NCBI GenBank assembly: GCA_977017575.1
Contig: CDRNVI010000021.1
Coordinates: 682,001 to 746,000, forward strand
Direction: 5' to 3'
Source of the DNA: Paramoeba atlantica
Lineage: Eukaryota > Protista > Discosea
Length of the DNA: 64,000 bases
Shown: in pieces, positions 3,714 to 64,000 of the stretch
Layout: each line of letters begins with the position of its first letter
Position numbering within the stretch: the stretch's first letter is position 1
The notes under the pieces: model-generated
The model's database searches: none
Told to the model about the DNA's origin: nothing
Seen by the model: only the letters and a program-made list of their open reading frames with translations
Translations under genes and position numbers: made by a program

Positions 3714-3906
3714 GGAAAATTACTTGCCCAATTTACATCCACAGCATAACCGATACACGCAAATGCGATCGTCTACTTCAATTTTTTAATCACAGACGCG
3801 AAAACAAGTTTTTCATACATACACGTATCTACAAATGTAGAATACAAATGTACCTACAAATTTTTAACATTGATTTGCACTAATTCAATTATTTAAATGC
3901 CCACTA

Positions 3907-4599: not shown

Positions 4600-5373
4600 T
4601 GTACAAAGTGAAGGCATGAAGGCGCAAAAAAATGAACTAAAAGGTTTTTTTCTACCTTAGTGGGTAAGCAAAGAGAGAATCAACGTGTCAGTCGTGGTCG
4701 TGTTCAACATGATCATAAAAAAGTAGAGTTCTTCCTTATTTTTACGAGCATGATAGCGTGCAATGAAGTTGATAACTTTTCGAGAAAAAACAAATTTAGC
4801 TTTTTTGAAGGTATTTTATGAGATCGAAAATTGTTGTCTTCACAGTACTTCTAGTATACTTCCTTCTAGGATTCTTCCTTCTTCCTTCTAGTATACAGTG
4901 TACTTTCTTTTCGCATACAGTGCTCGTAAAAAATAATGTACGTAAAATTGCGTGACGTAAAAAATAATGTTTTTTTAATAATAGCCACTTTTTTTGGAAA
5001 TTTTTTCTTATGCCTTTTTTTGTGCACCCCTTTCTATGACTGACATCCGGTCACACCTTATTGTCGAAAGGTTTTTAAATAACTTATTTTCGGTCTGGAA
5101 TTTTCGAAGTATGCTATGTCTCATGTTTGGCGGTATTCTCTTTTTTAGTAGCAGTAGTTAGGTGTAGTCGGGTAATCGTTTTCTCAAGTCAGACATCTTT
5201 TTTTTCAGAAACACCATAAAAAATATTATATTTTTTTAAATAATGACCACAAATCGGTGGCCATTATTAAAAAATATATTATTTTTTACGAGCACTGCAC
5301 TCTTTTCGACGTCGCATACTTTTCGAACTCCCTACTATCCCAGAAAAGCCAAATTTTATATCTCGCTCACATA

Positions 5374-11802: not shown

Positions 11803-13569
11803 ATGAGTAGAAATTTGAAACGGATGCGAGCTACAAACGATGGTGAATTTTCAGTTTCTGCTGACGACTCACCTACTGTTCAAACAAAATCAAAAACGAA
11901 AATCGGGAAAAAGGCCAGAAACGAAACAGTTGTACATTACAAATCCAGGAACGTCTTACCATCAACGCAAGTAGGTAAAGTCGAAGTTTTACCAAAATAT
12001 GATTTTATCCACACGTCCGTATCGACGCGTGATTCGGAACCTAACGGTGGCCAGCGCACCACTCGGGTGACTCCTACAACCCCAACAAAGTCTACAGCTC
12101 CACCTGTTACAATTGACCTTACACATTCTGGGCGCAGTTGTGATCCTTCTCTCCAACGTACACCCCCAAAAGCTGTGCACAAGGGTCGTGCAACAGATGC
12201 TAAAATCATATCCCGCGTAAATCGCATTTCCGTAAGCCCGCAATCTACTCCAGTCCGGTCTCGTCCCAGCACTGCGGCTGGAACAAATCCCCGGAATATC
12301 TCAGTTCAACCTCCACCTCAATATAGGTCATCACGATCTGCCACAAGCCATATACCTGCTTTGCCGAGTTCTTCCCCTATCCGAGAATCCGTTCCTGTTT
12401 CCGTATCTCAGCGCTCCTCCCAACGCCTTGCCTCTGTGTCTGCCGCTCCCTCCCTTCCTTCTCGTCCTGTGACATCTTCTCCCCCCTCTCATGAACGCGC
12501 AAAATCAAAAGCCAGTTTAACGACCCAGGTAGACCAGGCAGAATTACAAACGCAAAAGAAACCCGAGAAAACGCCTTCGTCAACTTCTCGAAGAGGACCG
12601 GTGAATCACCCTGCTTCTTCTTCCTTCTCCTCTTCACGAGATCGTGCCCCTTTGCCCATCTCCTCTCCCCACCCCTCCAACCGCCCATCCATTTCATGTC
12701 CCCACATTCCCGAGGCAACTTCCGATCCTCCGGAGACCGACACCCACAGAACACCACTGCCCACGACCGGGACTGCGACCTACACCTATGTCTACCCCTC
12801 TGAACAAACTGAGGCAAATTTGAATTCAAACGATAGGGAAGAAAGAGAAGATGGAGAAACGCATACCCGTCCCTCTGACCATTCTTCCCGGTCTCGACGA
12901 CGCCCGAATCGTCGTCGTCGAGGGAACCGAAATCAACCCGAAACGTACCGTCGGTCTCGCTTTCATGAGATCTCTCCTCCAGCGTATGCGTATGCCACAG
13001 AGGAGACACCCAATTTTGATTTCAATCCGTTAGCCGGTGGGATTCTGTTTGGGATTCCAGACACAGGAGAGGAGGATTCCGACACGTTGGAGGGAAATGA
13101 ATTCAACGCCATGGTTCCGTTTATGCAGCAAATGATGCGTGTGTTGGGTTCTGGCGCCCCAAACTCACGTAGCCGTGGACGAGGTCGCGCGCAAGGGGTG
13201 TCGAATGCGAATCTACGCTCCATGTTGGATTCGTTGAATGTGCTAAATGAGGTGGTGCAGCAACGGGAAATGGGTCTCACAGGAGATATTGATAACTACT
13301 CCTATGAGCAGCTTCTGGAATTGGAAGATCGTATTGGGAAGGTAAACACAGGTGTGAAAGCGTCAGAATTAGAGTATCTGGAAAATCGCAAAGTGTTTGA
13401 TGGAGACGGAGAGGTGCGCTGTACTATTTGCTTGGAAGAATACAAAAAAGAGGTGGAACTAACTGTTCTTAAATGCGATCACACATTCCACATTTCATGC
13501 ATGGAGGCATGGGCAAAGGATAACAACTGTTGTCCTCTCTGTAAAACTGAAATTGTTAAACGAGAATGA
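11803..13569 (+). CDS. RING-H2 E3 ubiquitin ligase with long S/P/T-rich N-terminus
   Basis: DNYSYEQLLELEDRIGKVNTG followed by CTICLEEY...LKCDHTFHISCMEAW...CPLCK (C3H2C3). Confidence 0.92.
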   Translation: MSRNLKRMRATNDGEFSVSADDSPTVQTKSKTKIGKKARNETVVHYKSRNVLPSTQVGKVEVLPKYDFIHTSVSTRDSEPNGGQRTTRVTPTTPTKSTAPPVTIDLTHSGRSCDPSLQRTPPKAVHKGRATDAKIISRVNRISVSPQSTPVRSRPSTAAGTNPRNISVQPPPQYRSSRSATSHIPALPSSSPIRESVPVSVSQRSSQRLASVSAAPSLPSRPVTSSPPSHERAKSKASLTTQVDQAELQTQKKPEKTPSSTSRRGPVNHPASSSFSSSRDRAPLPISSPHPSNRPSISCPHIPEATSDPPETDTHRTPLPTTGTATYTYVYPSEQTEANLNSNDREEREDGETHTRPSDHSSRSRRRPNRRRRGNRNQPETYRRSRFHEISPPAYAYATEETPNFDFNPLAGGILFGIPDTGEEDSDTLEGNEFNAMVPFMQQMMRVLGSGAPNSRSRGRGRAQGVSNANLRSMLDSLNVLNEVVQQREMGLTGDIDNYSYEQLLELEDRIGKVNTGVKASELEYLENRKVFDGDGEVRCTICLEEYKKEVELTVLKCDHTFHISCMEAWAKDNNCCPLCKTEIVKRE

Positions 13570-42186: not shown

Positions 42187-43830
42187 ATGCCCCCCTCCAA
42201 CCTCTACCTCTGGGGTGCCGTCGACTGGACCTCCCCCACCGAAACCACCCCCGACCCCCCCTCCCGCATCCTCGACTTCCCCCTCCACCTCCCCCTACGC
42301 GCCCCCCTCCCCGGCACCGTGCTCTCCATCGCCTGCGGGTCCCGGTTCGCCCTCCTCCTCCTCACCAACGGCACCGTCTGCGGGCTCGGCAACAACCAGC
42401 ACGGCCAGCTCGGGCTCCCCCCCTCCAGGCCCGTTGTGCCGTACCCCACGGAACTCCCCATCGGGCCCCCCGGGACACAGATCCGGGAGATCGCGGCGGG
42501 TCAGCTCCACGCGCTCGCACTCACGGCCGAGGGGGTGGTGTACAGCACCGGGGGGAATGCCGCGCGACAGCTGGGGAACACCCACGCGGGCTGTCGTCAC
42601 CGGTGGACGGTGGTGGGGATAGGGGAGGGGGGGAGGGAGAGTGTACGTGCGGTGGCGGCGGGTCGGGACTCCTCCTATGGGGTTACGACCACCGGGAAGG
42701 TGTACTCGTGGGGGGGAAACCGACAGGGGTGTTTGGGTCATGGTGAGGTGTATGGTGGCGGCAAAGGGGGGATGCAGGACGCGAGGGAGGGGGAGAAGTT
42801 CACCCCTGTGGAGCCTTCTCCTCGAGTGGTGGAATGGTTTCTGGACCGTGGAGTGCGTGTGGCGCGGATAGCGGCTGGGGCGTCTCATTTCGTGGCGATG
42901 ACAAGTGCGGGGGAGGTGTATACCTGTGGGGAGGGGGCGTTCGGTCGTCTTGGAGTCGGTAACACCGAGAATGCATGGGAGCCTGTCCATGTGACGACGT
43001 TCCCGAAGCGAAAGTACCCTGAACGCGTGGTGGGAGTTGCCGCGGGTGGGGACGTGACGTTCGTGCTACGGGAGTGTGCGGTGCTGGGTGTGATGGTCTA
43101 CCTCTTTGGGCGCATCGGGTCAGAGTTTGAAGGCTACTATTCGCCGGAAATATTTCCCGAGTTGTGCGGTCGCGAGGTTTGTGGGGTCTGTGCCGGGAAA
43201 ACTCATCAAATTGCGTGGACACGTAGTGGAGAGCTTTTCGGTTGGGGTAAGAACAGCAAATGTCCGACAAATGGTATGATTGGCGAAATTTTACATAAAG
43301 TATCACATCCGCATTCCTTTTCTCTTCTTCATAATTATCAAGTGATTGCCGCCGGATGTGGGGCGCACTACACCCTTATAGCCGTTGAACAATCCGACAA
43401 GGTCTCCCGAGAAATCGTCGTACCTTTAACCAATCGCTATTTTCAAAGAAACTTAAACTTCATCCCGTTAAGTAAAGTACCTTTTGAGAAAGCAGCCGCA
43501 GAATATCGCATTTTCATGCTTGGAGAGAAAGAAGGTTTGGCATACAATGAAACACTACCTCACCCACAGGAAGAGATGGAAAGAAACGAGGGATATGAAA
43601 AGAAAGGAGCACATGCATTGTCTGTAGGCTCCAAGGTCCGGGTCTGGGTACAGGACATTGAGGCGTTAGGCACCATTATTCGCCTACCTGGGCAAGAACA
43701 GGCAAACCCTCATGAATACGAAATTCACTGGCTTCGTGAAGATTGGGTAGATGAGGTCGTGACGCTGCCTTCAGACGATGAAACTGGGGATGTGGCTAAT
43801 ACAAATCGTTGGTTACATGGGTGGACATAA
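42187..43830 (+). CDS. RCC1/BLIP-II repeat beta-propeller protein
   Basis: IACGSRFALLL..G.VCGLGNNQHGQLG, IAAGQLHALALT.EG.VYSTG, VAAGRDSS...G.VYSWG.N..GCLG, IAAGASH...GEVYTCGEG.FGRLG. Confidence 0.92.
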   Translation: MPPSNLYLWGAVDWTSPTETTPDPPSRILDFPLHLPLRAPLPGTVLSIACGSRFALLLLTNGTVCGLGNNQHGQLGLPPSRPVVPYPTELPIGPPGTQIREIAAGQLHALALTAEGVVYSTGGNAARQLGNTHAGCRHRWTVVGIGEGGRESVRAVAAGRDSSYGVTTTGKVYSWGGNRQGCLGHGEVYGGGKGGMQDAREGEKFTPVEPSPRVVEWFLDRGVRVARIAAGASHFVAMTSAGEVYTCGEGAFGRLGVGNTENAWEPVHVTTFPKRKYPERVVGVAAGGDVTFVLRECAVLGVMVYLFGRIGSEFEGYYSPEIFPELCGREVCGVCAGKTHQIAWTRSGELFGWGKNSKCPTNGMIGEILHKVSHPHSFSLLHNYQVIAAGCGAHYTLIAVEQSDKVSREIVVPLTNRYFQRNLNFIPLSKVPFEKAAAEYRIFMLGEKEGLAYNETLPHPQEEMERNEGYEKKGAHALSVGSKVRVWVQDIEALGTIIRLPGQEQANPHEYEIHWLREDWVDEVVTLPSDDETGDVANTNRWLHGWT

Positions 43831-44138
43831 CCCAGGGCACAGTTACTTATTACAATTTTTCTTGTTTATTCTAAACCACCGTCCGGGCTATTGACCCCGG
43901 GACACGATAAGTCACTCCCTTCTAAAATTTGGTTGCTTTGTCCGTTTGGGCTAATTTTTTTTGCTTTTTGCAGATCTCGGTGACGCTTGTTTGCGCATGT
44001 CATATAGAGAATAGAACTGAGGACCAACCCAGGCTAAAGTGGACGAGGTGGATACTAAAGGCATCTTTGGAAAACCACCACAAAACTGGAACGGTATCTC
44101 CCGTTAAAGACCCTTTTGTCACATCAGAATGCTCTATC

Positions 44139-44339
44139 TTTTTTAGGCTCTTCGTTAACCCCCCACCCCCCAAACCCCCATTCATTTTTCATTTTTGGAC
44201 CACCGGAGCCCCCTTTTATATTTTTTTCCTTTGTTATAAACCTTCCTTTACTACTGTGTTCCTCTTTATATTTTCACCGTTTTTGTTCACTTTTTTTCAA
44301 TAATCGAGGGTAGAGCGGTAGTTTTACAACCACCGCAAT
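44139..44339. mobile_element. Internally deleted 201-bp copy of the ~0.94-kb array unit retaining both ends
   Basis: Starts TTTTTTAGGCTCTTCGTTAA and ends GAGCGGTAGTTTTACAACCACCGCAAT, as the units at 52.3-57.6 kb do, with different flanks. Confidence 0.8.
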
Positions 44340-44990
44340 GTTCCCTTAATTGTTTTGCAGGAATCAAGTTGAAAATAGCCCAAGATCACGAGATAAGTAT
44401 AGGGGGGACCACCCATTATCACACTTTTTTCGGTGCGATAATAAGCGAATTGTGTGATAACAAGTGAAATTTCGAGAAAGTGAGTTAATAAGTGGATACT
44501 TCACGTATTACAACGTTTTGGTTGCATATTGCAATTTTTTGACCTAAACTATGAAATATTGGTATGTGGGCTCAGCGGGGGTTGGCGGCACCTGGGCCAT
44601 GGGCGGAAAAAATAATTATTAATTACCTGAAAATGCCAAAACTAGACGAAAAATAATTATTCCCTTAATTGGCGTTCCCTTATTTAATGTGTCTCTTAAT
44701 TAATGTTTCCACGGTAATTATGGTATTATTTAATTCTTTTTTAGGCTCTTCGTTAAACGCGATGTTTGTTTTCAACTTAGAAGTCACTCATGCTGCGCGC
44801 TTCGCGTTGAAAACTACCGCCGCGTTTAACGAAGAGCCTAAAAAAGAAAATTCGACCTGGAAAGCCGAAGAAAACGGAAGGATTTGAGCCAAAAATATCC
44901 GATTTTTAGGTAAAAATAGGGCCATGTTTGCGTATTTTTGCTCTCAGGGCACTAAATTCGACTTGCGTATGGGAAATCACTCGTAGGGCC

Positions 44991-46552: not shown

Positions 46553-48039
46553 TGGTAGGCATGCATTCAAGGGTACAGAACGTATTGCGTAAAGAATGCG
46601 ACTCCAACTACACCATTCGTCCGACACAAAAAAGCCCCTTGGGGTCCAAAAAATACCTTTTCGCATTTTTTGGTCCAGAATGGGTCATTTTGGGAGGCGT
46701 ACCAAGGCTGGAAGAAGTGATATCCTGCGAAAAAAACTTTAGTTTACTTTATTTTTCCTTTTCACTTTTTTAAAGGGACTGACGGCTCTTTAGCACATTT
46801 ACATTTTGAACGTACACATCCTATGTTACATACAGGGGTGGCTAATTTTGGAAAATAGTACGCATTCGAGTGCTCTCGAACAGACGAACAGTCCTTGCCA
46901 TCCCATTGGGTAAATCAAGCTCAGATCGGAGCCGTCGCTTCAAAACGACCACATCCAATTTCCCGTTTGTTAAAAACGAGTTCCGTGACAAAACATTTCG
47001 CAAGGTAAATGGTTCTTCGGACTCTTTCTCTTCGGCTGCATCTTCATCTTCAAGTCCCCAATAGTCCTCTACACTGCTGGTAATGCTCCCTCTCCACGTA
47101 TGAAGAAACGCGGACGTCCAGAAGGATCACAGGCTCCCCCACGTACAGTCGAACCTCATATTTGGAGGACTTAAAACCGCTTTTTACAGTTTTAAAGTTT
47201 TTACAGTAAAGAACTGACAGCTTTTTAAGTGCTCTATACCAACTAAGAAGCCCCTTAAACTACCGTACGTACTTCTAAAGACGACATTTTTACTTGCGTT
47301 TTTCTCCTATTTAAATATTATAGCGTTAACGCTATATTATTTAAATACAAACTTTAACACTATATTATTTAAATAGCGATTTAAATAATACACCGTTCCC
47401 CGGGTTATATTACTGTGTTCCTCTTTATATTTTCACTGTTTTTGTTCACTTTTTTTTCAATAATGGAGTGTAGAGCGATAGTTATACAACCACCGCAATT
47501 GAGGGAGATACGGTGAGTATCTAACTCGCTTACTAAGGTTAATTCCGCGAGCTCAAAATGGGCATAAAACGAGCACAAAAACAATTTTTTTTAAAATTTT
47601 AAAAACAGAGGTATGGCTCATCAATGAATCTCTGTAATACTCCAAAAATGAAAACAATCGAGTCCGGTCAGCAGTTTTTAGAATCCTTTTACGAAAACGG
47701 CGACTCGGAATGCGGCTCAGAGGCGGACAATTCAAATCCATAAAAACGCGAAGATCCTTGATTATATTCCCAAAATTGACAGACTACAGCTGTTTCAAAG
47801 TTTGTGGAATATTTTTGAGCTCCTAAACTAACTTTCAGAATTATTGTTTTTTTTGAAACGCATTTCACTCGCCGACGGCATAACAAATGAACGAAAAAAA
47901 GGTATGATTTTCTCAGCCTTGGAAAAGTGGCCAGCTGGCCCCTGGCACAATGGTGAGCCGGCCACCGCCTCTAAAAATGGCCGGCTGACTACCAAAAATT
48001 GCAATTTGTATTTCGTATACGTAAGATGAATGGCAGCGT

Positions 48040-48935
48040 CCAAAAAAAAGCCGCAAGCTGGCCACCTCCTGCATGAAAGGGCAGCTGGCCACTTTTTCAG
48101 GGGGTGGCCAGCTGACCACTTTTTCAGTGGGTGGCCACTGAAACGCATCTGGCCAGGTGGCCACTTTTTCGAGTGGTGGCCAGCTGGCCACTTTTTCGGA
48201 GGGCGGCCAGGTGACCACATTTTCAGTGGATGGCCAGGTGGCCACTTTTTCAGTGGATGGTCAAGTGGGCCAACTTTTCCAGAGGGTGGCCAGGTGGCCA
48301 CTTTTTCAGAGGGTGGCCAGGTGGGCCAACTTTTCCAGATGGTGACCAGGTGGCCACTTTTTCAGTGGGTGGCCAGCGGGCCACTTTTTCAGAGGGTGGT
48401 CAGCTGACCACTTTTTCAGGGGGCGGCCAGGTGACCACATTTTCAGTGGATGGCCAGGTGGCCACTTTTTCAGTGGATGGCCAGCTGGCCACTTTTTCAG
48501 AGGGTTGCCAAGTGGGCGAACTTTTCCAGAGGGTGACCAGGTGGCCACTTTTTCAGAGGGTGGCCAAGTGGGTCAACTTTTTCAGGGGGCGGCCAGGTGA
48601 CCACTTTTTCAGTGGATGGCCAGCTGGCCACTTTTTCTTAGGGTGGCCAGCTGGCCACTTTTTCAGTGGGTGGCCAGGTGGCCACTTTTTCAGAGGGTGG
48701 CCAGCGGGCCAGTTTTTCAGGGGGCGGCCAGGTGACCACTTTTTCAGTGGATGGCCAGCTGGCCACTTTTTCAGAGAGTGGCCAGCTGACCACTTTTTCA
48801 GTGGGTGGCCAGGTGGCCACTTTTTCAGAGGGTGGCCAGGTGGCCACATTTTCAGTGGGTGGCCAACTGGGCAATTTTTCAGAGGGTGGCCAGCTGGCCA
48901 CTTTTTCAGGGGGTGGCCAGCTGACCACTTTGTCA
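48040..48935. repeat. 27-bp satellite array (~33 units)
   Basis: Consensus near TGGCCAG(C/G)TGGCCACTTTTTCAG(A/T/G)GG(G/A); gives the spurious 9-aa repeat ORFs (FSEGGQVAT). Inverted degenerate units at ~47920-47995. Confidence 0.95.
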
Positions 48936-49036
48936 GAAGCCAATTTTGAGAAGAAGGTTGGCATTGTTTTGCCAATTCTTACTGCGAGAACGCCCACGAA
49001 ATTTACTGATCGATACGACAAAACTGTTTTTGTAGT

Positions 49037-50046: not shown

Positions 50047-50344
50047 TCACCGTCTACTTTAAAAGCATAGAAAATTCATGCGCAGAAATTTTATGCGTAA
50101 TCACATAATTTCTGATAACATTTTTTGCAGTCTTTTAAACTTTGTCTTTTGTGTTATGTTAGCACTCTTTGCTAAAAAAGTTAGCCTGAATTGTGGGAGA
50201 TACTATAGTACCGGATGCCCCCCAGTAAAAGAATGGTTTTTGGGTCGAAATGGCCAAATCTCTCTTACTGGGGGGGGTATGCTTTTTTGGCCAGTTTCCT
50301 CTTTTCTCCCAACTTTTGTCTAGTTTTTAACCCGGGGAACGGTA

Positions 50345-50640
50345 TATTATTCAATAACGCTACATTATTCAAATTACACTACATTATTCAAATTAACACT
50401 ATATTATTCAATTTAACACTATATTATTCAAATAACGCTATAATATTGAAATCGCCAATTTTTGGCATGATGGACCGGATTTTAGACAAACTTTTGCATT
50501 ACCATCCACCAAAATCGCATTTTTCGCTACTCACGGCGCTACTTTATTCAAATTAACACTATAATATTCAAATTAACACTATATTATTCAAATAACGCTA
50601 TATTATTCAAATAGAGCCGCATAATGCTATATTATTCAAA
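50345..50640. repeat. AT-rich ~19-20-bp satellite (AA(A/T)TAAC(G/A)CTATATTATTC)
   Basis: About 10 degenerate copies in two blocks (~50345-50455, ~50540-50640); related units at ~47315-47390. Confidence 0.85.
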
Positions 50641-51171
50641 CTTTTTTAGGCTGTTCGTTAAACGCGGTGGTTGTTTTCAACTTAGAAGCCACTCATGCTG
50701 CGCGTTTCGCGTTGAAAACTACCGCCGCGTTTAACGAAGAGCCTAAAAAAGAAAAATCGCGAAAAGATCATGCATATTCGATTTTTTAGGGGGAAAAACC
50801 TCGATTTTTCGGCAAAAAATGCGAAATTTTAAACCGAATTTATGCCGTTTTTGATGCCTTCCCAGTAGGAGACGGATCTGACGAAAAAAACGTCGTAGAA
50901 TGGTAGCTGAGGTCCCATACTCCTAAAACACGTTTTAGGAATCGATTTTGGAAAAATAATATGTTTACTTTTTTTGGGGTCAAAAAGAAATTTTTTTGGT
51001 CACCCCAAAAGTTTCGGAAATTTTGACCTTGTCGGACCCCTCCTGCGCGTACCAGGGGGGGGCGGAAAATTATCGCCGCGGCCTACTCTACCACTTCCCT
51101 GCGCTCGATTTCGAAAAACAAAAAAATCGAAAAAAAAATCGCGACGTATGCCCCCCCTGGACCCCCCACTC

Positions 51172-51287: not shown

Positions 51288-52305
51288 AGAGCCAGGTTGG
51301 TAGGGCACATGCTGAGACACGACACACCCTTCGCAAATGTCATGCTTTGGAGCACGAAAGAAAATGCTCGCATTAAATCACTTTCTGAAGCATGTGCGGA
51401 GGATCTTGGTATGGACGTAGCGGAGTTATGGGAATTGGCACAGGATCGGGAAGCATGGTGTGCAGTAGTGGGGAACTTGCGAGAGCGCCTAGAACCAATT
51501 GCGCGCTACCGTCCGGTATCGTCCTATACGAAGACCGAGGTCAATAAGATTTTGCTGTCTCCCCAGCTTACCGAGCTAGAAAAATTCGAAGCTCTGCAAT
51601 TCTATGAAGAAGGTAAGGAGCAATGGCCCGATCATGAGCTACTGCACATATATTGCGACGGTTCGATGTACCGCAGAGGAAACCATGTGGGAGCAGGAGC
51701 TGCCATAGTAATATGCCAAAGCGGATTTCTAAAGCTTACTTCGAAAGAGAAACTAAGTCCCACGTATGCTACACCGATCAGAGCTGAACTACGAGCCTTT
51801 CTAAATGCACTTCGCACGGGGAGCATCAAAGGAATACCAGTAGTGATCCATGTAGATGCTGAGCACGTTTGGAATTTCTAGCACCGCATTCGTGTGCCTT
51901 GTCAGCTGGGAAATTATTCTGACTTCGACAACTCTGATCTCCTCATGGAAATCGGCGAACTAGCGGGTAAAATTCTCGATAGCCAAAAGGTCTTTGTGGT
52001 GAAGGTGCGCGCACACTCGGGAAATACGATGAATGATCTTGCGGACACCCTAGCAAAGGCAGCATGCGAACAAGACAGTACTACGCCAGAAACAACCTCA
52101 AACTATACAAAAACTCCTGCACGACAGTTGACGGACGTAACAGAATGTAAACACACGTTCCGTGACAAAAATACATGCTTACATAAGTGCTGTAAGCGAC
52201 ACCTGAATAGTCAAGGCGAATGAAAGTCGAGCTTCATTTTCAGATTATATTTCTTTGTCATTACAGAAAATTCTCTAGTCACGACAGTGACGTATTATTA
52301 TTATC
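51288..52305 (+). mobile_element. 5'-truncated RTE-like LINE relic: RT C-terminal end plus RNase H, with one in-frame stop
   Basis: VGHMLRH...EDLG......ELAQDREAW..VV (RTE-type end); RNase H IYCDGS, RAELRA, IHVDAE, VKVRAHSGN.MNDLADTLAK. ORFs 51297-51881 and 51894-52223 are in the same frame across TAG at 51879. (TTA)n-like tail at ~52293-52304. Confidence 0.8.
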
Positions 52306-55300
52306 TTTTTTAGGCTCTTCGTTAAACGCGGTGGTTGTTTTCAACTTAGAAGTCACTCATGCTGCGCGCTTCGCGTTGAAAACTACCGCCGCGTTTAACG
52401 AAGAGCCTAAAAAAGAAAATTTAGCCTGGAAAACGGGAAGATTATAGCCAAAAATAGCCGAATTTCGGGTAAAAATGGAGTGTTTTTCGCGTATTTTTGC
52501 TGTCAGAGCACTAAATCCGACATTTGCGCGTGGGAAATCACTCGTAGGCATGAATGGAAGCCTACCGAACGTATTGGGTAGAGAATGCGACTCCAACCAT
52601 ACCATTCTTTCGACACAAAAATGCCCCTTTAGGTCCGAAAAATACTTTTTCACCTTTTTTAGTCAAAAATAGGTATTTTTGAGTGGCGCACCACGGTTCG
52701 AAGAAGGGACACCTTGCGAAAGCAACTGCGGAGAAAGCTAGTGTAGGTCCCAAACTATCAAAATACAATAGGGGAAACGATTTTGGAAAAATATTTTTTT
52801 TTGCCATTTTTTTCGCCAAGTTGAAATTTTTTTCAATTTTTTTTTCACCCCCGGGTAGGGGGATCGAAAATGCGCGCCAAGACGCCGGCTACCCTTTCTG
52901 CGGGTTTTTTTCGAAAACTAATTTTTTCGAAAAAATTTGCTCGACCATGACCCCCCCCCTGGACCCCCCCCTGGACCCCCCCCCTGGACCGCCCACCTGG
53001 CCCCCCCCTGGACCCCCCCCCTGGACCCCCCATTTTTTTCAATTTTTTTTTTTCTGTTTTGGACCACCGGAGCCCCCTTTTATATTTTTTTCTTCTATTG
53101 TATTACTGTGTTCCCCTTTATATTTTCACTGTTTTTGTTCACTTTTTTTTCAATTCTTTTTTAGGCTCTTCGTTAAACGCGGTGGTTGTTTTCAACTTAG
53201 AAGTCACTCTTGCTGCGCGCTTCGAGTTGAAAACTACCGCCGCGTTTAACGAAGAGCCTAAAAAAGAAAATTTATCCTGGAAAACGGAACGATTATAGCC
53301 AAAAATAGCCGAATTTCGGGTAAAAATTGGGTGATTTTTGGGTATTTTTGCTGTCAGAGCACTCAATCCGACATTTGCGCGTTGCAAATCACTCGTAGGC
53401 ATGAATGGAAGCCTACCGAACGTATTGGGTAGAGAATGCGACTCCAACCATACCATTCTTTCGACACAAAAATGCCCCTTTAGGTCCGAAAAATACTTTT
53501 TCACCTTTTTTAGTCAAAAATGGGTCATTTTGAGGGGCGCACCACGGTTCGAAGAAGGGATACCTTGCGAAACCAACTGCGGAGAAAGCTAGTGTAGGTC
53601 CCAAACTATCAAAATACAATAGGGGAAACGATTTTGGAAAAATATTTTTTTTTGCCATTTTTTTCGCCAAGTTGAAATTTTTTTTCCGAGAAAATCCGAA
53701 CTTGGCGGACCCGTCCTGCGGATACGCGGGGGGGTCACCCCAGGGTAGGGGGGTGGAAAATGCGCGCCAAGACCCCGGCTACCCTTTCTGCGGTTTTGTT
53801 TCGAAAACTAATTTTTTCGAAAAAATTTGCTCGACCATGACGCCCCCCCCTGGACCCCCCCCCTGGACCCCCCCCTGGACCCCCCCGCTGGACCCCCCCC
53901 CTGGACCCCCCGATGGACCCCCCATTTTTTTTCAAATTTTTTTTCTCAGTTTTGGACCACCGGAGCCCCCTTTTATATTTTTTTCTTCTATTGTATTACT
54001 GTGTTCCCCTTTATATTTTCACTGTTTTTGTTCACGTTTTTTTTCAATAATCGAGTGTAGAGCGGTAGTTTTACAACCACCGCAATTTTCTTTTTTAGGC
54101 TCTTCGTTAAACGCGGTGGTTGTTTTCAACTTAGAAGTCACTCATGCTGCGCGCTTCGCGTTGAAAACTACCGCCGCGTTTAACGAAGAGCCTAAAAAAG
54201 AAAATTTAGCCTGGAAAACGGAAACGATTATAGCCAAAAATAGCCGAATTTCGGGTAAAAATGGGGTGATTTTCGCGTATTTTTGCTCTCAGAGCACTAA
54301 ATCCGACATTTGCGCGTGGGAAATCACTCGTAGGCATGAATGGAAGCCTACCGAACGTATTGTGTAGAGAATGCGACTCCAACCATACCATTCTTTCGAC
54401 ACAAAAATGCCCCTTTAGGTCCGAAAAATACTTTTTCACCTTTTTTAGTCAAAAATGGGTCATTTGGAGGGGCGCACCACGGTTCGAAGAAGTGATACCT
54501 TGCGAAAACAACTGCGGAGAAAGCTAGTGTAGGTCCCAAACTATCAAAATACAATAGGGGAAACGATTTTGGAAAAATATTTTTTTTGTCATTTTTTTCG
54601 CCAAGTTGAAATTTTTTTTCAAAAAAAATTTTCCGAAAAAATCCGAACTTGGCGGACCCGTCCTGCGGAAACGCGGGGGGGTCACCCCCGGGTAGGGGGG
54701 TGGAAAATGCGCGCCAAGACCCCGGCTACCCTTTCTGCGGTTTTTTTTCGAAAACTAATTTTTTCGAAAAAATTTGCTCGACCATGAACCCCCCCCCTGG
54801 ACCACCCCCCTGGACCCCCCCCTGGACCCCCCCGCTGGACCCCCCCCCTGGACCCCCCGATGGACCCCCCATTTTTTTCAAATTTTTTTTCTCAGTTTTG
54901 GACCACCGGAGCCCCCTTTTATATTTTTTTCTTCTATTGTATTACTGTGTTCCCCTTTATATTTTCACTGTTTTTGTTCACGTTTTTTTTCAATAATCGA
55001 GTGTAGAGCGGTAGTTTTACAACCACACCGCAATTTTCTTTTTTAGGCTCTTCGTTAAACGCGGTGGTTGTTTTCAACTTAGAAGTCACTCATGCTGCGC
55101 GCTTCGCGTTGAAAACTACCGCCGCGTTTAACGAAGAGCCTAAAAAAGAAAATTTAGCCTGGAAAACGGAAAGATTATAGCCAAAAATAGCCGAATTTCG
55201 GGTAAAAATTGGGTGATTTTTGGGTATTTTTGCTGTCAGAGCACTCAATCCGACATTTGCGCGTTGGAAATCACTCGTAGGCATGAATGGAAGCCTACCG

Positions 55301-57640
55301 AACGTATTGGGTAGAGAATGCGACTCCAACCATACCATTCTTTCGACACAAAAATGCCCCTTTAGGTCCGAAAAATACTTTTTCACCTTTTTTAGTCAAA
55401 AATGGGTCATTTTGAGGGCGCACCACGGTTCGAAGAAGGGATACCTTGCGAAACCAACTGCGGAGAAAGCTAGTGTAGGTCCCAAACTATCAAAATACAA
55501 TAGGGGAAACGATTTTGGAAAAATATTTTTTTTGCCATTTTTTTCGCCAAGTTGAAATTTTTTTTCCGAGAAAATCCGAACTTGGCGGACCCGTCCTGCG
55601 GATACGCGGGGGGGTCACCCCAGGGTAGGGGGGTGGAAAATGCGCGCCAAGACCCCGGCTACCCTTTCTGCGGTTTTGTTTCGAAAACTAATTTTTTCGA
55701 AAAAATTTGCTCGACCATGACGCCCCCCCCTGGACCCCCCCCCTGGACCCCCCCCTGGACCCCCCCGCTGGACCCCCCCCCTGGACCCCCCGATGGACCC
55801 CCCATTTTTTTCAAATTTTTTTTCTCAGTTTTGGACCACCGGAGCCCCCTTTTATATTTTTTTCTTCTATTGTATTACTGTGTTCCCCTTTATATTTTCA
55901 CTGTTTTTTGTTCACGTTTTTTTTCAATAATCGAGTGGTAGAGCGGTAGTTTTACAACCACCGCAATTTTCTTTTTTAGGCTCTTCGTTAAACGCGGTGG
56001 TTGTTTTCAACTTAGAAGTCACTCATGCTGCGCGCTTCGCGTTGAAAACTACCGCCGCGTTTAACGAAGAGCCTAAAAAAGAAAATTTAGCCTGGAAAAC
56101 GGAACGATTATAGCCAAAAATAGCCGAATTTCGGGTAAAAATGGGGTGATTTTCGCGTATTTTTGCTCTCAGAGCACTAAATCCGACATTTGCGCGTGGG
56201 AAATCACTCGTAGGCATGAATGGAAGCCTACCGAACGTATTGTGTAGAGAATGCGACTCCAACCATACCATTCTTTCGACACAAAAATGCCCCTTTAGGT
56301 CCGAAAAATACTTTTTCACCTTTTTTAGTCAAAAATGGGTCATTTGGAGGGGCGCACCACGGTTCGAAGAAGTGATACCTTGCGAAAACAACTGCGGAGA
56401 AAGCTAGTGTAGGTCCCAAACTATCAAAATACAATAGGGGAAACGATTTTGGAAAAATATTTTTTTTGTCATTTTTTTCGCCAAGTTGAAATTTTTTTCA
56501 AAAAAAATTTTCCGAAAAAATCCGAACTTGGCGGACCCGTCCTGCGGAAACGCGGGGGGGTCACCCCCGGGTAGGGGGGTGGAAAATGCGCGCCAAGACC
56601 CCGGCTACCCTTTCTGCGGTTTTTTTTCGAAAACTAATTTTTTCGAAAAAATTTGCTCGACCATGAACCCCCCCCTGGACCACCCCCCTGGACCCCCCCA
56701 TGGACCCCCCATTTTTTTCAATTTTTTTTTCAGTTTTGGACCACCGGAGCCCCCTTTTATATTTTTTTCTTCTATTATATTACTGTGTTCCTCTTTATAT
56801 TTTCACTGTTTTTGTTCACTTTTTTTTCAATAATCGAGTGTAGAGCGGTAGTTTTACAACCACCGCAATAATCCAGGGTAGAGCGGTAGTTTTACAACCA
56901 CCGCAATTTTCTTTTTTAGGCTCTTCGTAAAACGCGGTGGTTGTTTTCAACTTAGAAGTCACTCATGCTGCGCGCTTCGCGTTGAAAACTACCACCGCAT
57001 TTTACGAAGAGTCTAAAAAAGCAAATTGGCCAGGGACGCGGAAGAAAACGGAAGGATTTGAGCCAAAAATAGCCGATTTTTAGGTTAAAATGGGGTGATT
57101 TTTGTATATAGAGCACTAAACTTGACATTTGCGTGTGGGAAATGACTCGTAGGCACGCATTCGAGGCTACAGAACGTATTGGGTAGAGAATGCGACTCCA
57201 ACCACAGGATTCGTACGACCCAAAAAGACCTCTTGGTGTCCAAAAATTACTTTTTCGCATTTTTTGATCAAAAATGGGACATTTTGGGAGGCGTACCACG
57301 GCTTCAAGAAGCGACACCTCGCAAAACCAATGACGTAAAAAGCTAGAATAGGTCCCAAACTAAAAAAATACAATAGGCGAAACAACTTTGGAAAACTTTC
57401 TTTTTACCATTTTTTTCGTCAAGTTGAAATTTTTTTCAAAACAAATTTTTGACCCGTCTTGCGGATACGAGGGGGGGTCACCCCCGGGTAGGGTATGCCC
57501 CCCCCCATGGACCCCCCATTTTTTTTCAGTTTTTGTTTTCAATTTTGGACCACCGGATCCCCCTTTTATATTTTTTTCCTTTACCGCGTTTAACGAAGAG
57601 CCTAGAAAAGAAAAATTTGACAGGAGAGTAAAAGAAACCA
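52306..57640. repeat. Tandem array of a ~0.94-kb hairpin-ended element (five full units plus a diverged sixth)
   Basis: Unit starts at 52306, 53157, 54091, 55039, 55972 and 56912; each has a ~121-bp palindrome, a TGGACCCCCCC minisatellite and (except the first) a terminal GCGGTAGTTTTACAACCACCGC hairpin. Confidence 0.95.
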
Positions 57641-58286
57641 GAGGGTTAGTTTTGGATTTGGTCAAAAAAGAGCCGATAGTTGGGCAAAAATAGGGTTGTT
57701 TTTGCATATTTCCGCTCACATGTGTTTTCCTTCGGTTCGCACGATTTTGAACGAAGCAGGGTGGAGACCTCTTTTTTTGAAAGGCCCTTGAATTCACCCC
57801 GGCTTTTGAAGAAGGGGGGGGCTTTACCTCGTGGATTTACCTCTTCGTTTTGATTCATTTTGTTTACGCCAGGGGTGCAGTTAATGCCATGTCGGAACGC
57901 TTTTCTGACAGTACGTTGGGTATGCACTAATTGAGTCATCAGAAGCATATTTGTTGAATGATCAGGCTAAAAATAGAAGAAGTGATGACTGCAAATGTAG
58001 ATCTGCTATGTAAATGTAAACATTTTTTTAACAAATTTAGTTTCAATTGTATTTATTTGAGTTTAGAAAATGCGAAGTTACAAATACTTACAGAGGATTT
58101 CCGAGACACAAAGTAATACCACAGAAAAACTTTGATGCGACGAATCGTAAACAAAAAACGGTGCTGTGGACGAATTTAAGCCGAAAATTTCTCGTAAGAA
58201 AGGTGTTTTCTTTCCTTCTCCAACCTTCGAATCATGACTTCAAAATTTTAAACCAACTTTCACTTCCAAACGTCTTACACACTTAT

Positions 58287-58628
58287 TCAGAAATTTAAGT
58301 ATCTGTTTCTCTTCTTTTTCCCTTTGAAGTAAACGCTCGATGCGCGCTTCGCTTCTTCCGTAGTGCTAAAACACACGTGCGCCAGTCCCTTTTTTGATAC
58401 GATTGTTATACAATCGATTTCACCATACGAAGCGTAATGCTTGGTAAGGTCTTCTTTAGCCGTAGAGGAGGGAAGGTGTTCTATTGTGATTGAGCGCTCA
58501 TCACGCTCTTCGCGCGCAGAGCGCAAAACGTGTAGAGATTCTAAGTAATCATCTCTTTTGCGCTTTGTATCTCTTTCCTTGTCGGAAATGTCGTTACCAT
58601 TGGTTGATTGATTCTCCGCCGAGGCCAT
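58287..58628 (-). pseudogene. Single-RRM gene or gene fragment (PABPN1-like start of domain)
   Basis: REERDERSITIEHLPSSTAKEDLTKHYASYGEIDCITIVSKKGLAHVCFSTTEEAKRA (RNP2/RNP1-like); the domain seems cut short at its C-terminus. Confidence 0.6.
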
Positions 58629-58712
58629 AGTAAATTCAAAGAAAGTTTTCAAAAAAATCAAGCTGAGTCTAGAAACATTCAACTTAAAAAGCAATACATG
58701 AACGTAGAAGTC

Positions 58713-58896
58713 TTGTTTTTGAAGGGCCTGCCCGGAGGGCCCTTCGAGAGGGTGCAGATCCGCTGCCGCGGGGGGTGCTTTACCTCGTGACATGTAATTT
58801 TGAAGGAAACAAGCTTCTGATATCTTTTTTTGCAGGGCCCGCCCGGAGCGCCCTTCGAGAGGGTACAGGCCCGCTGCCGCGGTGGGTGCTTTTGAA
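58713..58896. repeat. Two copies of a ~110-bp GC-rich direct repeat; the second is the SINE-A target
   Basis: AGGGCC.GCCCGGAG.GCCCTTCGAGAGGGT.CAG..CCGCTGCCGCGG occurs twice; TTTGAAG.AAACAAGCTTCTGA occurs at ~58800 and resumes at ~59341 after the SINE. A degenerate relative lies at ~57775-57835. Confidence 0.8.
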
Positions 58897-59333
58897 AAAA
58901 AAAAAAAAATCCAAATCATTCCGGATTGCTCCGGATGGTCACTGGCAAGCCAGACCCTTCACAGACAGATTTGGAAGTTCCGAGGCCGACGTCCTCTACC
59001 AGTTTCCGCTTGTCCAAGGCGGCACCAACGTGCTGTTGCCAACACGCTGCGTCGACGAACTGTACTTCAACACGGCTTACCCAAGAGGTGTAAGCCGGGT
59101 AAGGGAGCTGGTTCCCTGAGGGGAGGGTCCGGGACGGTCCTCCGAGTACTGGGCCTAGTCGGTTATCAGCCCAGCCTCTTAGAGTGAGGCCGCCGGGAAT
59201 ATTGCGATGAGCGGGTTTGAACTCGCCGTCTGAGCACCATGTGCTTCAAACTTTGAGTTCTTGCCACTCCGCCACTCCTCCCCTTTGCCACTCCGCCACT
59301 CCTCCCCTTTGCCACTCCGCCACTCCTCCCCGC
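58897..59333 (-). mobile_element. tRNA-derived SINE, family A, copy 1
   Basis: Minus strand: A box TGGCGGAGTGG, B box GAGTTCAAACCC, body near-identical to 62876-63260, oligo(T) 3' end; 13-bp TSD GGGTGCTTTTGAA at 58884-58896 and 59334-59346. Confidence 0.9.
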
Positions 59334-62260
59334 GGGTGCTTTTGAAGCAAACAAGCTTCTGAAATTTCGATAAAAAAAATTGAAAGCAATTTTGACGGAG
59401 CGTAATTCTGCAGCCATGATGGGGACATTTTTTTTGGTAGAGGGCGCTTGAGCGTTGGGGTCACTCGCACTTCTTCTGCCGAAGCTGAAGACGCCGGGCT
59501 TGTGACCGGTATCAAGCGTGCTTCCCCCCTAGAGAGGTCTTCCTAAGAAGATCGTTTCAATCTAATTTCTTAGAATTGATAAGTCAAATCGGTAAGCCGA
59601 TTTGCTTTTTCCATGGCCGGAAATTTAGGCCTATGGTAACCTGAAGTCAGGTGTGTTCCTGGGCGATCTGTGCCCATGCCAGGGAGCACTCGAATATCAT
59701 CGAGGCATTGTGCCCTGGATATTGCTACTGTGAGCTTGGCGAGTTCCGGTCTCTTGGACCACGTCCTATCATTCAAGTCAAGAATAACATCGTTCTTCAC
59801 GGTGATACCTTGTACTTTGTGATACGTATAGGCAAATCCCAATTCCACTTGAAAGTTTCCTTGGGAAGCCTTATCATGGTGCTGCGCCTTTTTGGCGTAA
59901 AATTCTACACCTGACCCCTTCTCAATGCATTGCATAAAAGAAGGGGCTTTTCGTAGATAACAGACACCATCAATAGTGTCGTATGACAAATCGTCTGACA
60001 CAAGGTCTCTCATTTCAATCACTGTCCCATTCGCAATTTTCATTGTATAAGGAGCAATGTTCTCGGTGATTACACCGGGTGCTCCTTTTACATACGGAAA
60101 ATGCTTCAGGGTGTGTGTCAATGAGTTTACCTTGGACGTTATCGCCTGTCCATGCGAACAATGGGCAATTGTGGCGTCTGGCAAAATTTCTTGCCATTGC
60201 GACATTAATCTTGTGCCGTTCAATATTTGTTCCAACAAATAACTGAATTTTCTTGGTCCTCAGAGGTAAGAGGTTTTACCAATTGGATGAACTTCTTCAA
60301 CCCCTCATTGGGAGCTTTTCGAAGAAGACGCAAGATATCTGAAAATACAGTATCTTGTCGTGCTCGCATTTGCTGTTTGAGTTCAAACACATACGAGACT
60401 TGAAAAATATTCTCAAAAATGGGATTATTACCAGGAGAGCTATCTTCTATGGTAAGAGACGCTCCTTGTACTGGTCTCAGCTGATAAAAATCTCCCACAT
60501 AGAGCATGTTGATGCCTCCATAGGGAAGCTGCTCATTGCCTTTGATTTGCTGCAACCTAGTGTTGATACAGGAAAGGAAACACTTGCTGATCATTGACAC
60601 TTCGTCGACTATGATTAATCGACATTTCTCATACCTTTGTTGGTATGGTAGAAGGCTACTGCTTGAAAGATGTTTCAAATTTCTTGCAGTAGCCCCTATC
60701 GGTATGCAGAGGGAAGCGTGTATTGTGCAACAGTGCAGTACTGATGCGGCGATCCCAGTGGGCGCCATTGCAATACATTGGCTTCCCAGTTCTTGCATTA
60801 TGAAACGGGAAACTAGACTTTTCCCGGTTCCGGGTCCACCGAGCAGAAACATACATTTCCGCTCGGGGTCTAGTTTCCCGTTTAGTAAATCTTCAGTTTG
60901 ATTTACGCACTGTTTCTGTGCTTGGTTCAGTTCAATGGAACTGTTGTCTTCGCGAAACATGTAGCTGCGATCAAACGTAATCTCTTCGTATTGATTACTG
61001 CGAGCCAGTGGACGATCCTCATTAAAATGAGCTCTGTCCACTTGGCTCAGATTGATCCGAAGTTGCAAATCGTTCGTTTTGGATCATTTCAGCATAGCGC
61101 TCTCGCGCATTTATGACTGAAATATTGGACCTTGTCATTGTCGATAAAAGATCAATATTTTCTTCAGAGGAGTTCTCAGTAGAACCTCCTAACGCGGCCG
61201 TTAAAGCTCGCGTTTGTAGTTCGCAGTATGCATTCTGCTGAACCAATCGCTCTTCATTAACCACTGCAGTATTCTGCTGTGCTTCAAGAGCATCTTGAAG
61301 ATGAGGTTCAACCTCTCGCACTTCAAGCTCATTTTCGTACGCATGTTGCGTGCTAATCTTGCTTCTTCCAGAGTGCAAGCATCTTTGCGTCGATACAAAT
61401 CTGCCGCGTTCTCTGTATTCTTCGAAGCATGTAAAAGCCGAAGAAAGTTGCACATTATGTCATACTTTCCAGGCGTATTTATTTTCGCTTCATTGAGAAG
61501 CTTTTCAAACCCTTCTAGGGTCATTTCATGGCTCGTTGAGCCTTTCGTCCATGGGGAAAACAATGCCACCATGTGTTTCGCTACTCGAAGATGGCTTCGA
61601 GCTCGTGCCCCAGGTTCTTTTGAAGAATTCAATATGGGAAAACCTGGTATAGCTAGAACTGTGTGCAAAGAGCGCAACTGTTGCTCAACAATATCTCCAG
61701 GCTCAAATTCCGGGAGGCCTTCAATGTCCTCAAAGGCGTATCTCCCATTAGCACGACGTCCGCGACGACGTCTTCGATTTGTCCCTGACTCAAAATCTGA
61801 ATCATGATCGGGCTCTTCTTGAGCTAGTTCAGCTCTTTTCTTCTTTACGCTGACAATGCCTGCATAGGAATACAGGTCAAGGTCTTGAAGATCTTCGCCC
61901 CTGTGCATGTAACGCACATGGAGTGGTGCAAGAACTGCACAACCATGTTCGGTGATCATTAGAGGAGCCTCTAAGATACCTTTGTCGAACTCCATATCAG
62001 AGTCTTGTGACGAATCATCGTCACTGATTTCTAGATCTCTGTGATCTGACTCACTTGAGATATTTGCCAGGAACTTCATTACACGGTTCATATTGATCCA
62101 TGTGAAGTTATGGCTCATATACTCGGAGGATTGGCCGAGACAAAAGGCAGTTGCCATTTCGATTGAAACTTCCATCTTTCGATGTGTCTTGTTCGACAAT
62201 TTCTGTAGAACTAAGCGTGCCATCGGAATGTCAGTTTGCACTCTGTGCTCTTAATTCAGA

Positions 62261-62688
62261 CAGACAGACAGAAGACACGGAGGGCTCTGCAGCGCCAACC
62301 GTTAGGGTAGAGCCTCAGGTCACCGACCTTCATTGTCTCCCAGACGGCACTCGACGCCTTGCGGCCCGATAACGGCTACCCAACCGTAGCTACCAGGACG
62401 GGCGCCCAACCCCGTTGCATCGTGTAGGCTGTGTCTCAAGCCTCCTTTGCGTAAGCAGCTCGCAATTTAGCGGCTGCGCTGGAGCCTGGTTCAGCTCGGC
62501 GGTTCCGGGTCGGTCCTCCAGGGGAGCGGGGTTGGGTGTGGGCCTTGAAGGCACTCCTGATCGCTTTCCCTTTGTAGTGAGGCCGCCAGGTTGCGAGTTT
62601 TGTCGATAGCGGGAATCGAACCCACAACCTGCAGGTTGTAAGGCCCACCGTCTAACAACTACGCCCACACCGCCCTGAATTCAGAGCC
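62261..62688 (-). mobile_element. tRNA-derived SINE, family B
   Basis: Minus strand head GGCGGTGTGGGCGTAGTTGTTAGACGGTGGGCCTTACAACCTGCAGGTTGTGGGTTCGATTCCCGCTATCGACA (B box GGTTCGATTCCC), (TCTG)n tail; 13-bp TSD CTCT(T/G)AATTCAGA at 62248-62260 and 62689-62701; removal restores Helitron frame QMALNSEHRVQTDIP. Confidence 0.88.
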
Positions 62689-62875
62689 CTCTGAATTCAG
62701 AGCCATTTGAAGGTGGTTATTGGCTGCGCGAAGTGCTGGTACAATGTACACAGGTGGACCAATGTCCTTGCTCATATATTTTATGAGATATTGCATAATT
62801 TTTATGCCGGGACCTTCGCTCCCAATGAAAACTACACATGTATTGCATCTTACGCAAGCAGTGAGTGTTTCATTG

Positions 62876-63260
62876 GAGCGGAGGTGGCGGAGTGGCAAGA
62901 ACTCAAAGTTTGAAGCACATGGTGCTCAGACGGCGAGTTCAAACTCGCTCATCGCAATATTCCTGGCGGCCTCACTCCAAGAGGCTGGGCTGATAACCGA
63001 CTAGGCCCAGTACTCGGAGGACCGTCCCGGACCCTCCCCTCAGGGAACCAGCTCCCTTACCATGCTTACACCTCTTGGGTAAGCCGTGTTGACGTACAGT
63101 TCGTCAACGCAGCGTGTTGGTAACAACACGTTGGTGCAGCCTTGGAAAAGCGGAAACTGGTAGAGGACGTCGGCCTCGGAACTTCTAAATCTGTCTGTGA
63201 AGGGCCTGGCTTGCCAGTGACCATCCGGAGCGATCCGGAATGATTTGGATTTTTTTTTTG
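62876..63260 (+). mobile_element. tRNA-derived SINE, family A, copy 2
   Basis: A box TGGCGGAGTGG, B box GAGTTCAAACTC, oligo(T) end; perfect 13-bp TSD GAGTGTTTCATTG at 62863-62875 and 63261-63273; removal restores Helitron frame VPYNETLTACVRCN. Confidence 0.92.
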
Positions 63261-64000
63261 GAGTGTTTCATTGTACGGAACGGTGATGGATCCCCGTTTA
63301 GTGTGTTGTGTCGGGTCCTGGTTGTTGCGCAGAAGCACAATCAGAGACCTTTCATCAAGTACTGGGCAAATGGTATCATTTTTAACCGACCGTGTTGGAG
63401 CCTTGAGCCGGAATTCCGGTTGTCCGGATTCATCCATCTTAACCTCAACCTCTCTAACTTCCGTTTCATTTTCATGAAGTACGGATGGAATGCCATATCG
63501 GCATTTGTTCTTGCTAATGTTTCCTTTCATTTTGAAACGCACGGGTCTGTGACCAACGTGCTGCTGAACATCAACAGCACATTTGGCCACATGTTCCCTG
63601 AAATAATCATCCTTTTCATCAGGAATGATATGTAGACCTCCGCGATACATCTTTGAGTAGTCGAGCGTTGCAGGTCCGTAAATCTCCTTACTGATCCTTT
63701 GCGCCCACTCGGGCAGATCAGCGCGCATCGTCGTACCCAAAGACTACCATCGTGCTCCTTCACAATGTGAATTAATTCGGAGACGTAATGTGGACTAAGA
63801 TTCGTCCATAGCACACTATGAAAGTGTAGCGCACCTCTTTTCTGGCATTCTACAACACCAAAAAATGCTCGAGGGCGACCAAAGAGGCCTTCAAGAACGT
63901 CACGTTCCTTCTTTACCTCATCTACATTCGACATTCCGTACAATTCGGTAAGAAGAGTACGGATTTGCCGTTCGAAAATGCTAGTGGATCTGACAGGATT

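Follow-up and report, generated by a model that had tools for sequence, protein, structure and literature searches.

The stretch of DNA analysed here (the window) comprises 64,000 nucleotides of contig 21 (CDRNVI010000021.1, positions 682,001 to 746,000 of the forward strand) of the 45.7-Mb genome assembly of Paramoeba atlantica, and it harbors, at window positions 52304-56906, an array of five repeat units of 850-948 bp that are arranged head-to-tail. Our analysis strongly suggests, at a probability of roughly 0.9, that this unit is a non-autonomous transposon of the Helitron (rolling-circle) type whose transposition proteins are supplied in trans by an autonomous family of 12.9 kb residing in the same genome. 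Two RepHel-coding elements of this size start and stop at exactly the two structures that delimit the unit, which is thus likely to be their deletion derivative. Several features expected of the Helitron superfamily were identified: a partner protein with an HUH Rep domain, two tyrosines and a Pif1-like helicase, termini common to partner and unit, and insertion without target duplication. The repeat unit, which is non-coding, would accordingly be regarded as a discrete mobile element and not as a plain satellite.

The head-to-tail array of ~0.94-kb units proposed in a preliminary description of this stretch was readily recovered, with starts at positions 52304, 53154, 54086, 55034, 55967 and 56907. 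The units are as follows, unit 3 serving as the reference unit:

52304-53153, plus strand: unit 1 (850 bp; 94-95% identity to the other units; without the 38-nt hairpin module)
53154-54085, plus strand: unit 2 (932 bp; 99.5% identity to unit 4)
54086-55033, plus strand: unit 3 (948 bp; 99.1% identity to unit 5)
55034-55966, plus strand: unit 4 (933 bp)
55967-56906, plus strand: unit 5 (940 bp; 38-nt hairpin module present twice, at 56828-56907)

Adjoining units are 97-98% identical, and since the identities between units 2 and 4 and between units 3 and 5 exceed those of neighbours, it appears that a two-unit block has been duplicated and that the array represents a higher-order repeat. Unit 1, in which the hairpin module is missing, runs straight on into unit 2. 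A sixth stretch (56907-57640) is only ~82% similar to units 1-5. A scan of positions 43000-64000 against Rfam did not match any RNA family.

An inverted-repeat scan revealed that every unit starts with a palindrome whose arms of 44-48 nt are 92-96% complementary and enclose a loop of 27-29 nt, the T leader of the unit being the outer arm of this palindrome. As single-stranded DNA, it has a folding energy of -51.7 kcal/mol (z = -12), a value that was equalled by none of 200 shuffled sequences. An internal C-rich minisatellite is likewise present in every unit, and both features agree with the preliminary description. At the other end of units 2-5 there is a 22-nt hairpin, after which AA and the T run of the next unit follow, so that the terminal hairpin originally described holds for these units, whereas unit 1 is devoid of it and unit 5 carries the module twice; the number of 38-nt hairpin modules per unit is 0, 1 or 2. 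The short hairpin (folding energy -6.2 kcal/mol on the plus and -8.0 kcal/mol on the minus strand, z about -3 to -4) is a shorter, inverted version of the palindrome core and is nearly invariant among all copies compared. Read directly, 11 of its nucleotides are complementary to the palindrome arm, resulting in an asymmetric inverted repeat. The element ends in T(1-5)C followed by T6 on one side and in GCAA on the other. The long palindrome occurs at one end only, and the scan did not identify terminal inverted repeats spanning both ends. The positions of these structures are:

54086-54206, not stranded: terminal palindrome of ~121 nt (arms of ~47 nt with 2 mismatches, 29-nt loop)
52300-52420, 53154-53268, 55032-55154, 55965-56087 and 56904-57028: equivalent palindromes
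54062-54083, not stranded: 22-nt terminal hairpin with a stem of 9 bp and a loop of 4 nt, separated from the sharp end by 2 nt
54782-54870, plus strand: C-rich minisatellite with a period of 12-13 nt and ~6.5 copies
52949-53032, 53843-53923, 55723-55803 and 56661-56710: C-rich minisatellite of the other units

The Helitron Rep domain (Helitron_like_N) was matched 29 times in the genome. The best autonomous copy, which resides on contig 43, possesses an uninterrupted open reading frame (ORF) of 2975 amino acids (aa) with the Pfam domains DUF6570, Helitron_like_N and Pif1-like helicase (PIF1), and is followed by a second ORF of 268 aa (ORF2) with an RRM domain. In the alignment, the large protein retains its HUH histidines, its Y-x3-Y tyrosine pair and both Walker motifs (A and B). 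A further copy on contig 41 is 99.7% identical to that on contig 43 over 10 kb while the flanks of the two are unrelated, and the homology between them extends precisely from the T leader with the palindrome to the hairpin with AA. As the limits of homology coincide with these two structures, they constitute the termini of an autonomous element of 12,860 bp. Thus, autonomous Helitrons with the same ends as the unit do exist, and the mobilisation by a Helitron family suggested earlier is well supported by the two ends common to these RepHel elements and the unit. In the unit, the initial ~75 nt of the autonomous element are fused to its final 895 nt (positions 11966-12860, 94% identity). Direct repeats resembling the unit are located inside both ends of the autonomous element; hence, the unit looks like a product of recombination or deletion between them. 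Copies of the terminal structures in the interior of the autonomous element are crippled, comprising single palindrome arms and one unit-like repeat without the hairpin module, and whole terminal structures are found only in the outermost position.

The protein itself is only distantly related to Helraiser. In an exhaustive search its nearest relatives displayed 24-31% identity, the match to Helraiser (7LCC) amounted to 33 bits and was confined to the helicase, and no match was obtained for the Rep part among solved structures. A protein atlas search returned generic Helitron and Pif1 clusters only, and a word-based protein search with the Rep region yielded only a single near-identical fragment, located in an assembly of the European Nucleotide Archive (ENA). 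No apurinic/apyrimidinic (AP) endonuclease domain was identified by Pfam in the 2975-aa ORF or in its 22 nearest long relatives.

Some additional observations concern the autonomous elements and their relatives. ENA assembly ERZ24900291 (contig ctg2510l) contains a 940-aa helicase fragment which is 96% identical to this family and adjoins reverse-transcriptase fragments; the assembly probably stems from the organism analysed here or from a sister organism. Tandem repeats of ~267 bp are found in the 5' third of the RepHel ORF and vary in number between copies (L043/L047, contig 43, 152882-161806; L049), and the long N-terminal extension of the protein displays a weak zinc-ribbon match. A second Helitron family is present on contig 99. 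A repeat of ~111 bp belonging to the autonomous element occurs twice at window positions 58716-58892, and ~17 copies of it are situated beside the Helitron of contig 99 (L045:2827-4776).

A decayed autonomous copy directly follows the array. The preliminary description had placed a Helitron relic at a distance of ~2 kb; this has to be corrected, as the relic is contiguous with the array from position 56907 onward. Its features within the window are:

56907-64000, plus strand: decayed autonomous element, running past the end of the window
58287-58919, minus strand: second ORF with RRM domain, the counterpart of the 268-aa ORF2 of the intact copy
60220-61068, minus strand: Pif1-like helicase fragment of the RepHel gene

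Positions 56907-57120 match positions 1-207 of the intact element (93.7% identity) and positions 57183-58904 match positions 208-1947 (95%), while the segments 59334-62261, 62689-62875 and 63261-64000 match positions 1927-5790 (97-98%). The colinear order is interrupted by three blocks of inserted DNA (58905-59333, 62262-62688 and 62876-63260); ARAGORN did not detect a tRNA gene in any of these three blocks, and we do not endorse labeling them as tRNA-derived SINEs (short interspersed nuclear elements). The Rep domain of the decayed copy is located at the end of the window and beyond (C21:745809-746192). On the basis of these alignments, the divergent sixth stretch (56907-57640) is the terminal region of the decayed autonomous copy, which is joined to unit 5 by an exact joint of the type found between units.

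The element is by no means restricted to arrays. When a single mismatch was allowed, the 26-nt hairpin end was matched 659 times in the genome, and the palindrome loop, at up to 2 mismatches, 890 times; reversed control patterns were not matched at all. The 659 hairpin ends compare with only 24 exact-match joints between copies, ~96% of the hairpin ends lie outside arrays, and the best matches to the unit are mostly single dispersed copies of 94-97% identity, which settles the earlier question of whether the unit might occur in arrays only. In the dispersed copies the hairpin end is razor sharp; the opposite end consists of a leader of varying length (one to five T's, C, six T's). The copies are young: pairwise identity among them has a median of 97.3% and reaches 99.6-99.9% between unrelated loci. 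A scan of JGI metagenomes with the hairpin end returned no match. In accordance with the preliminary description, dispersed copies within the window retain the ends of the element, one of them surrounding an internal deletion with both ends and another being a fragment of the hairpin end:

44137-44338, plus strand: deletion derivative of ~200 bp, consisting of a short leader and the beginning of the palindrome arm plus the last ~150 nt with the hairpin; flanked by A on one side and by T on the other
44731-44990, plus strand: palindrome-end fragment, palindrome plus ~150 nt
47405-47498, plus strand: fragment of the hairpin end, sharing 96.8% identity with the end of the autonomous element
50640-50755, plus strand: solitary palindrome of a sister subfamily, which differs in sequence after the inner arm

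Short arrays of an AT-rich repeat of 19-20 nt are located at 50343-50612, just upstream of the solitary palindrome of the sister subfamily.

Five empty sites were identified in the sequences compared, and in each case the insertion had occurred between A and T with nothing duplicated or lost. At two pairs of loci (L020 compared to L006 and L026 compared to L012) the flanks, once joined, are 98-99% identical to a paralogous or allelic locus that has no interruption; at L016 and L025 the copies reside within short tandem repeats, the neighbouring repeats of which display the uninterrupted sequence; and at L019 the copy is nested in another copy of its own family. Some of these empty sites may be insertion polymorphisms. 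Together with the inverted-repeat scan, they corroborate the earlier statement that the element has neither target site duplications nor terminal inverted repeats. Among non-redundant flanks, A occupies position -1 in 32 of 41 cases and T position +1 in 35 of 39; the next positions outward (-2 and +2) carry A or T. The cut at A|T (the bar marking the insertion point) could be shifted by one base, as the element starts with T and ends with A. We considered whether the A at -1 might be part of the palindrome, and this was rejected: in copies with a short leader the palindrome template predicts T or C at this position, yet A is found, and the A accordingly belongs to the target. The earlier proposal of insertion into T-rich sites is not upheld by the empty sites and flanks, which identify the AT dinucleotide as target. 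None of the five empty sites displays a run of T's 5' to the point of insertion, and the T leader is part of the element.

At least four copies reside in one and the same motif (…GGTATAA|TAA…) of an unrelated repeat that is rich in CCTAGG palindromes. This motif is empty at L012:2640-2700 and L012:3434-3534 and filled at L019, L026, L013 and L025. It folds as a hairpin loop, and the leaders differ among the inserted copies, which for this reason look like independent insertions. The motif may thus be a hot spot for insertion into single-stranded or hairpin DNA.

How, then, would such an element move? By analogy with Helraiser, the Rep domain would nick one strand at one of the hairpin-marked ends and become linked to the nicked end, whereupon the helicase would peel off this strand as far as the opposite hairpin, which would give the signal for the second cut. 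Subsequently, the ends would be joined into a circle, the joint of which would be the AA-to-T-leader joint that is found between units, and the circle would finally integrate at AT. For Helraiser, circles with an exact head-to-tail joint, a preference for AT and read-through upon removal of the hairpin have been described (PMC4778049). The evidence for a circular intermediate in the present family is indirect and consists of genomic joints that are identical to the expected circle joint.

Which of the two structures acts as the 5' end is less evident. The preliminary description took the palindrome as the start and the hairpin as the end of the element. The genes, which are antisense to that orientation, run the opposite way, and we somewhat favour the inverse, in which the element would, on the coding strand, begin with the short hairpin (5') and finish with the palindrome (3'). 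This is in line with the direction of the genes, with the contrast between a ragged palindrome end and a sharp hairpin end, and with the palindrome ends outnumbering the hairpin ends. It is also favoured by the layout of Helitron2 and Helentrons, in which the 5' end is followed at 2-4 nt by a palindromic repeat whose complement precedes the 3' end by ~30-60 nt (PMC4067079, PMC5148889). The originally assumed orientation is supported by the units without hairpin module that run on into the next unit, and transposase genes in inverted orientation have been documented in the Helitron2-type group (PMC5148889).

In three variant copies an identical variant is present in both arms of the palindrome, and the outer arm stops at different bases in different copies. 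Such a pattern would be compatible with an outer arm that may arise during transposition when the free 3' end of a hairpin folds back and is extended on its own template. The transposase may, in addition, prefer sites of the type hairpin-AA|T, as are provided by the ends of resident copies and by the hairpin loop of the unrelated repeat. It might be speculated that the two properties jointly provide a built-in route from transposon to tandem array, an idea that we consider doubtful.

With regard to the arrays, a hairpin end is followed by leader and palindrome within 15 nt in 24 cases, counted as exact pattern matches, compared to ~0.1 expected from copy number and genome size. Nine of the 24 joints, distributed over several loci, are without spacer, and in all others the spacer begins with T and finishes with A, as would fit a second copy entering an AT a few bases from the end of a resident one. 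Three of the four autonomous copies examined adjoin units head-to-tail, with spacers of 0, 3 and 5 nt. At a further locus (L004, ~2440-2500, minus strand) the hairpin end of a related subfamily, which has a different stem sequence and the same ending (…CGCAA), lies 3 nt before a single copy, forming a head-to-tail joint between subfamilies. In our reading, the seeding of arrays depends on the transposase, and their growth is due to unequal exchange. For seeding, a copy might integrate at the AT formed by the terminal A of a resident copy and the flanking T, or a few nucleotides off; alternatively, multimeric rolling-circle products might integrate. Unequal exchange would then expand the seeded array. 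Helitrons inserted in tandem have also been described in bat, fly, rice, maize and frog (PMC5148889, PMC12001565).

Several points weigh against the interpretation of the unit as a rolling-circle element, or at least against parts of it. The target-site statistics were derived from ~40 copies only, drawn from 53 loci. The mechanism is deduced from the anatomy of the element and by comparison with Helraiser, to which the protein is only distantly related. The termini fully fit none of the three Helitron variants described so far, and the location of the short hairpin 2 nt from the sharp end, which resembles a canonical 3' terminator, argues for the orientation opposite to the one we prefer. Finally, in some arrays spacers recur (a 12-nt spacer twice, TAA three times), unit and spacer being repeated together; these repeated spacers and the two-unit block in the window demonstrate that recombination adds to arrays alongside transposition. 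The arrays might even be explained by ordinary recombination throughout, that is, by chance insertions side by side and subsequent unequal crossing-over or slippage, with no role for rolling-circle transposition in the formation of tandems. Such a scenario would readily produce the higher-order repeat in the window and the hairpin module at 0, 1 and 2 copies, and the units repeated with their spacers in other arrays are something that an exact circle joint cannot yield. However, adjacent copies exceed chance by far, nine joints at several loci are exact and spacer-free, and joints link units also to autonomous copies and, at L004, to the end of a related subfamily. We therefore consider recombination as the sole source of the arrays unlikely, albeit worth bearing in mind: it accounts for the growth of arrays and not for their seeding.

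Regarding classification, the preliminary assignment to non-autonomous rolling-circle elements held, whereas that to the Helentron (DINE-1/HINE) type did not. A strict member of the Helentron lineage would conform well to several traits of the family: along the coding strand, one end has a palindromic subterminal repeat at a distance of 2 nt and the other has its complement at ~27-45 nt, copies differ in how many terminal T's they carry, the unit contains a minisatellite, and tandem arrays are formed. HINE and DINE-1 elements (PMC4067079) likewise have a palindromic subterminal repeat 2-4 nt from one end, a stem-loop near the other and an internal micro- or minisatellite, traits that the present family displays in coding-strand orientation; also shared are a boundary marked by a variable string of T's and a copy number that is high relative to the autonomous partner. 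In contrast to Helentrons, however, the partner is devoid of an AP endonuclease, as are its 22 nearest long relatives, and insertion occurs at AT instead of TT, rendering strict membership very improbable. A further difference from DINE-1 and from the elements of oyster (PMC7492417) is that in those mainly the internal repeat is expanded, whereas here whole elements are arranged end to end.

The family resembles Helitron2 (FoHeli1/2 of Fusarium and Helitron2 of Chlamydomonas; PMC5148889) in its hairpins at both termini and its lack of an endonuclease domain. Helitron2 likewise displays a short asymmetric inverted repeat that connects one terminus to a subterminal site ~30-40 nt inside the other, transposase genes that in some cases run inversely to the ends, many short non-autonomous derivatives, and tandem arrays. 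In frogs, tandem arrays are commoner in Helitron2 than in Helitron1 (PMC12001565). Unlike Helitron2, which targets TTTT|T or TTTT|C, the present family inserts at A|T and owns its T run, and its 121-nt palindrome reaching the very end is far larger than the short hairpins described. The likeness to Helitron1 and Helraiser (PMC4778049) consists in insertion at A|T with no duplicated target, a hairpin close to a sharp end, the exact end-to-end joint as in Helraiser circles, and the continuation of units without hairpin module into the next unit, which is reminiscent of read-through after loss of the hairpin. In contrast, Helitron1 ends in TC...CTRR and not in T(1-5)C plus T6 and GCAA, its single hairpin is located 10-12 nt from the 3' end, whereas in the present family the short hairpin lies 2 nt from the end and a second, very large terminal palindrome is present, and the 2975-aa protein is only weakly similar to Helraiser, in the helicase alone. 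Based on this comparison, the family is best described as an apparent hybrid that combines the double-hairpin ends of Helitron2 with the canonical AT target, and not as a strict Helentron or DINE-1 family.

That the unit might be a cut-and-paste foldback element, a miniature inverted-repeat transposable element (MITE) or a plain satellite merely adjoining a Helitron is hardly tenable: a long palindrome and an internal minisatellite are indeed also known from foldback elements and from MITEs bearing tandem repeats, but here the palindrome is confined to one end without terminal inverted repeats spanning both, the five empty sites lack target duplications, RepHel-coding elements at unrelated loci carry the very same two ends, and nearly all hairpin ends lie outside arrays. 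These readings were rejected on account of the fixed ends common to RepHel elements and the lack of target duplication, as was a retroposon, there being neither a tail nor a target duplication.

The present genome, which is small and has its genes in reading frames without interruptions, holds a young and seemingly intact Helitron family with fully defined ends, at least 650 passenger copies and exact end-to-end joints. It may allow direct tests of how double-hairpin Helitrons choose their ends and strand and terminate, and of how tandem arrays of whole elements are seeded, a route to satellite DNA. The combination of Helitron2-like ends with the canonical AT target blurs the sets of features by which Helitron variants are separated. 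Trypanosomatids have been reported to lack DNA transposons. For kinetoplastids, Merlin, in Bodo and Perkinsela, is the only such element described in the papers searched (PMC12278014), and Helitron-like ORFs of Diplonema have been mentioned in passing (PMC10161547).

Two further observations concern the surroundings of the array. Positions 48082-48937 of the window contain ~32 copies of a 27-nt minisatellite with a GGCCAC…GTGGCC inverted repeat, which is unrelated to the Helitron unit. Less than 10 kb from the array, the host genes for eIF3a and an RCC1-repeat protein (38893-41571 and 42187-43830, respectively) are present as single uninterrupted ORFs.

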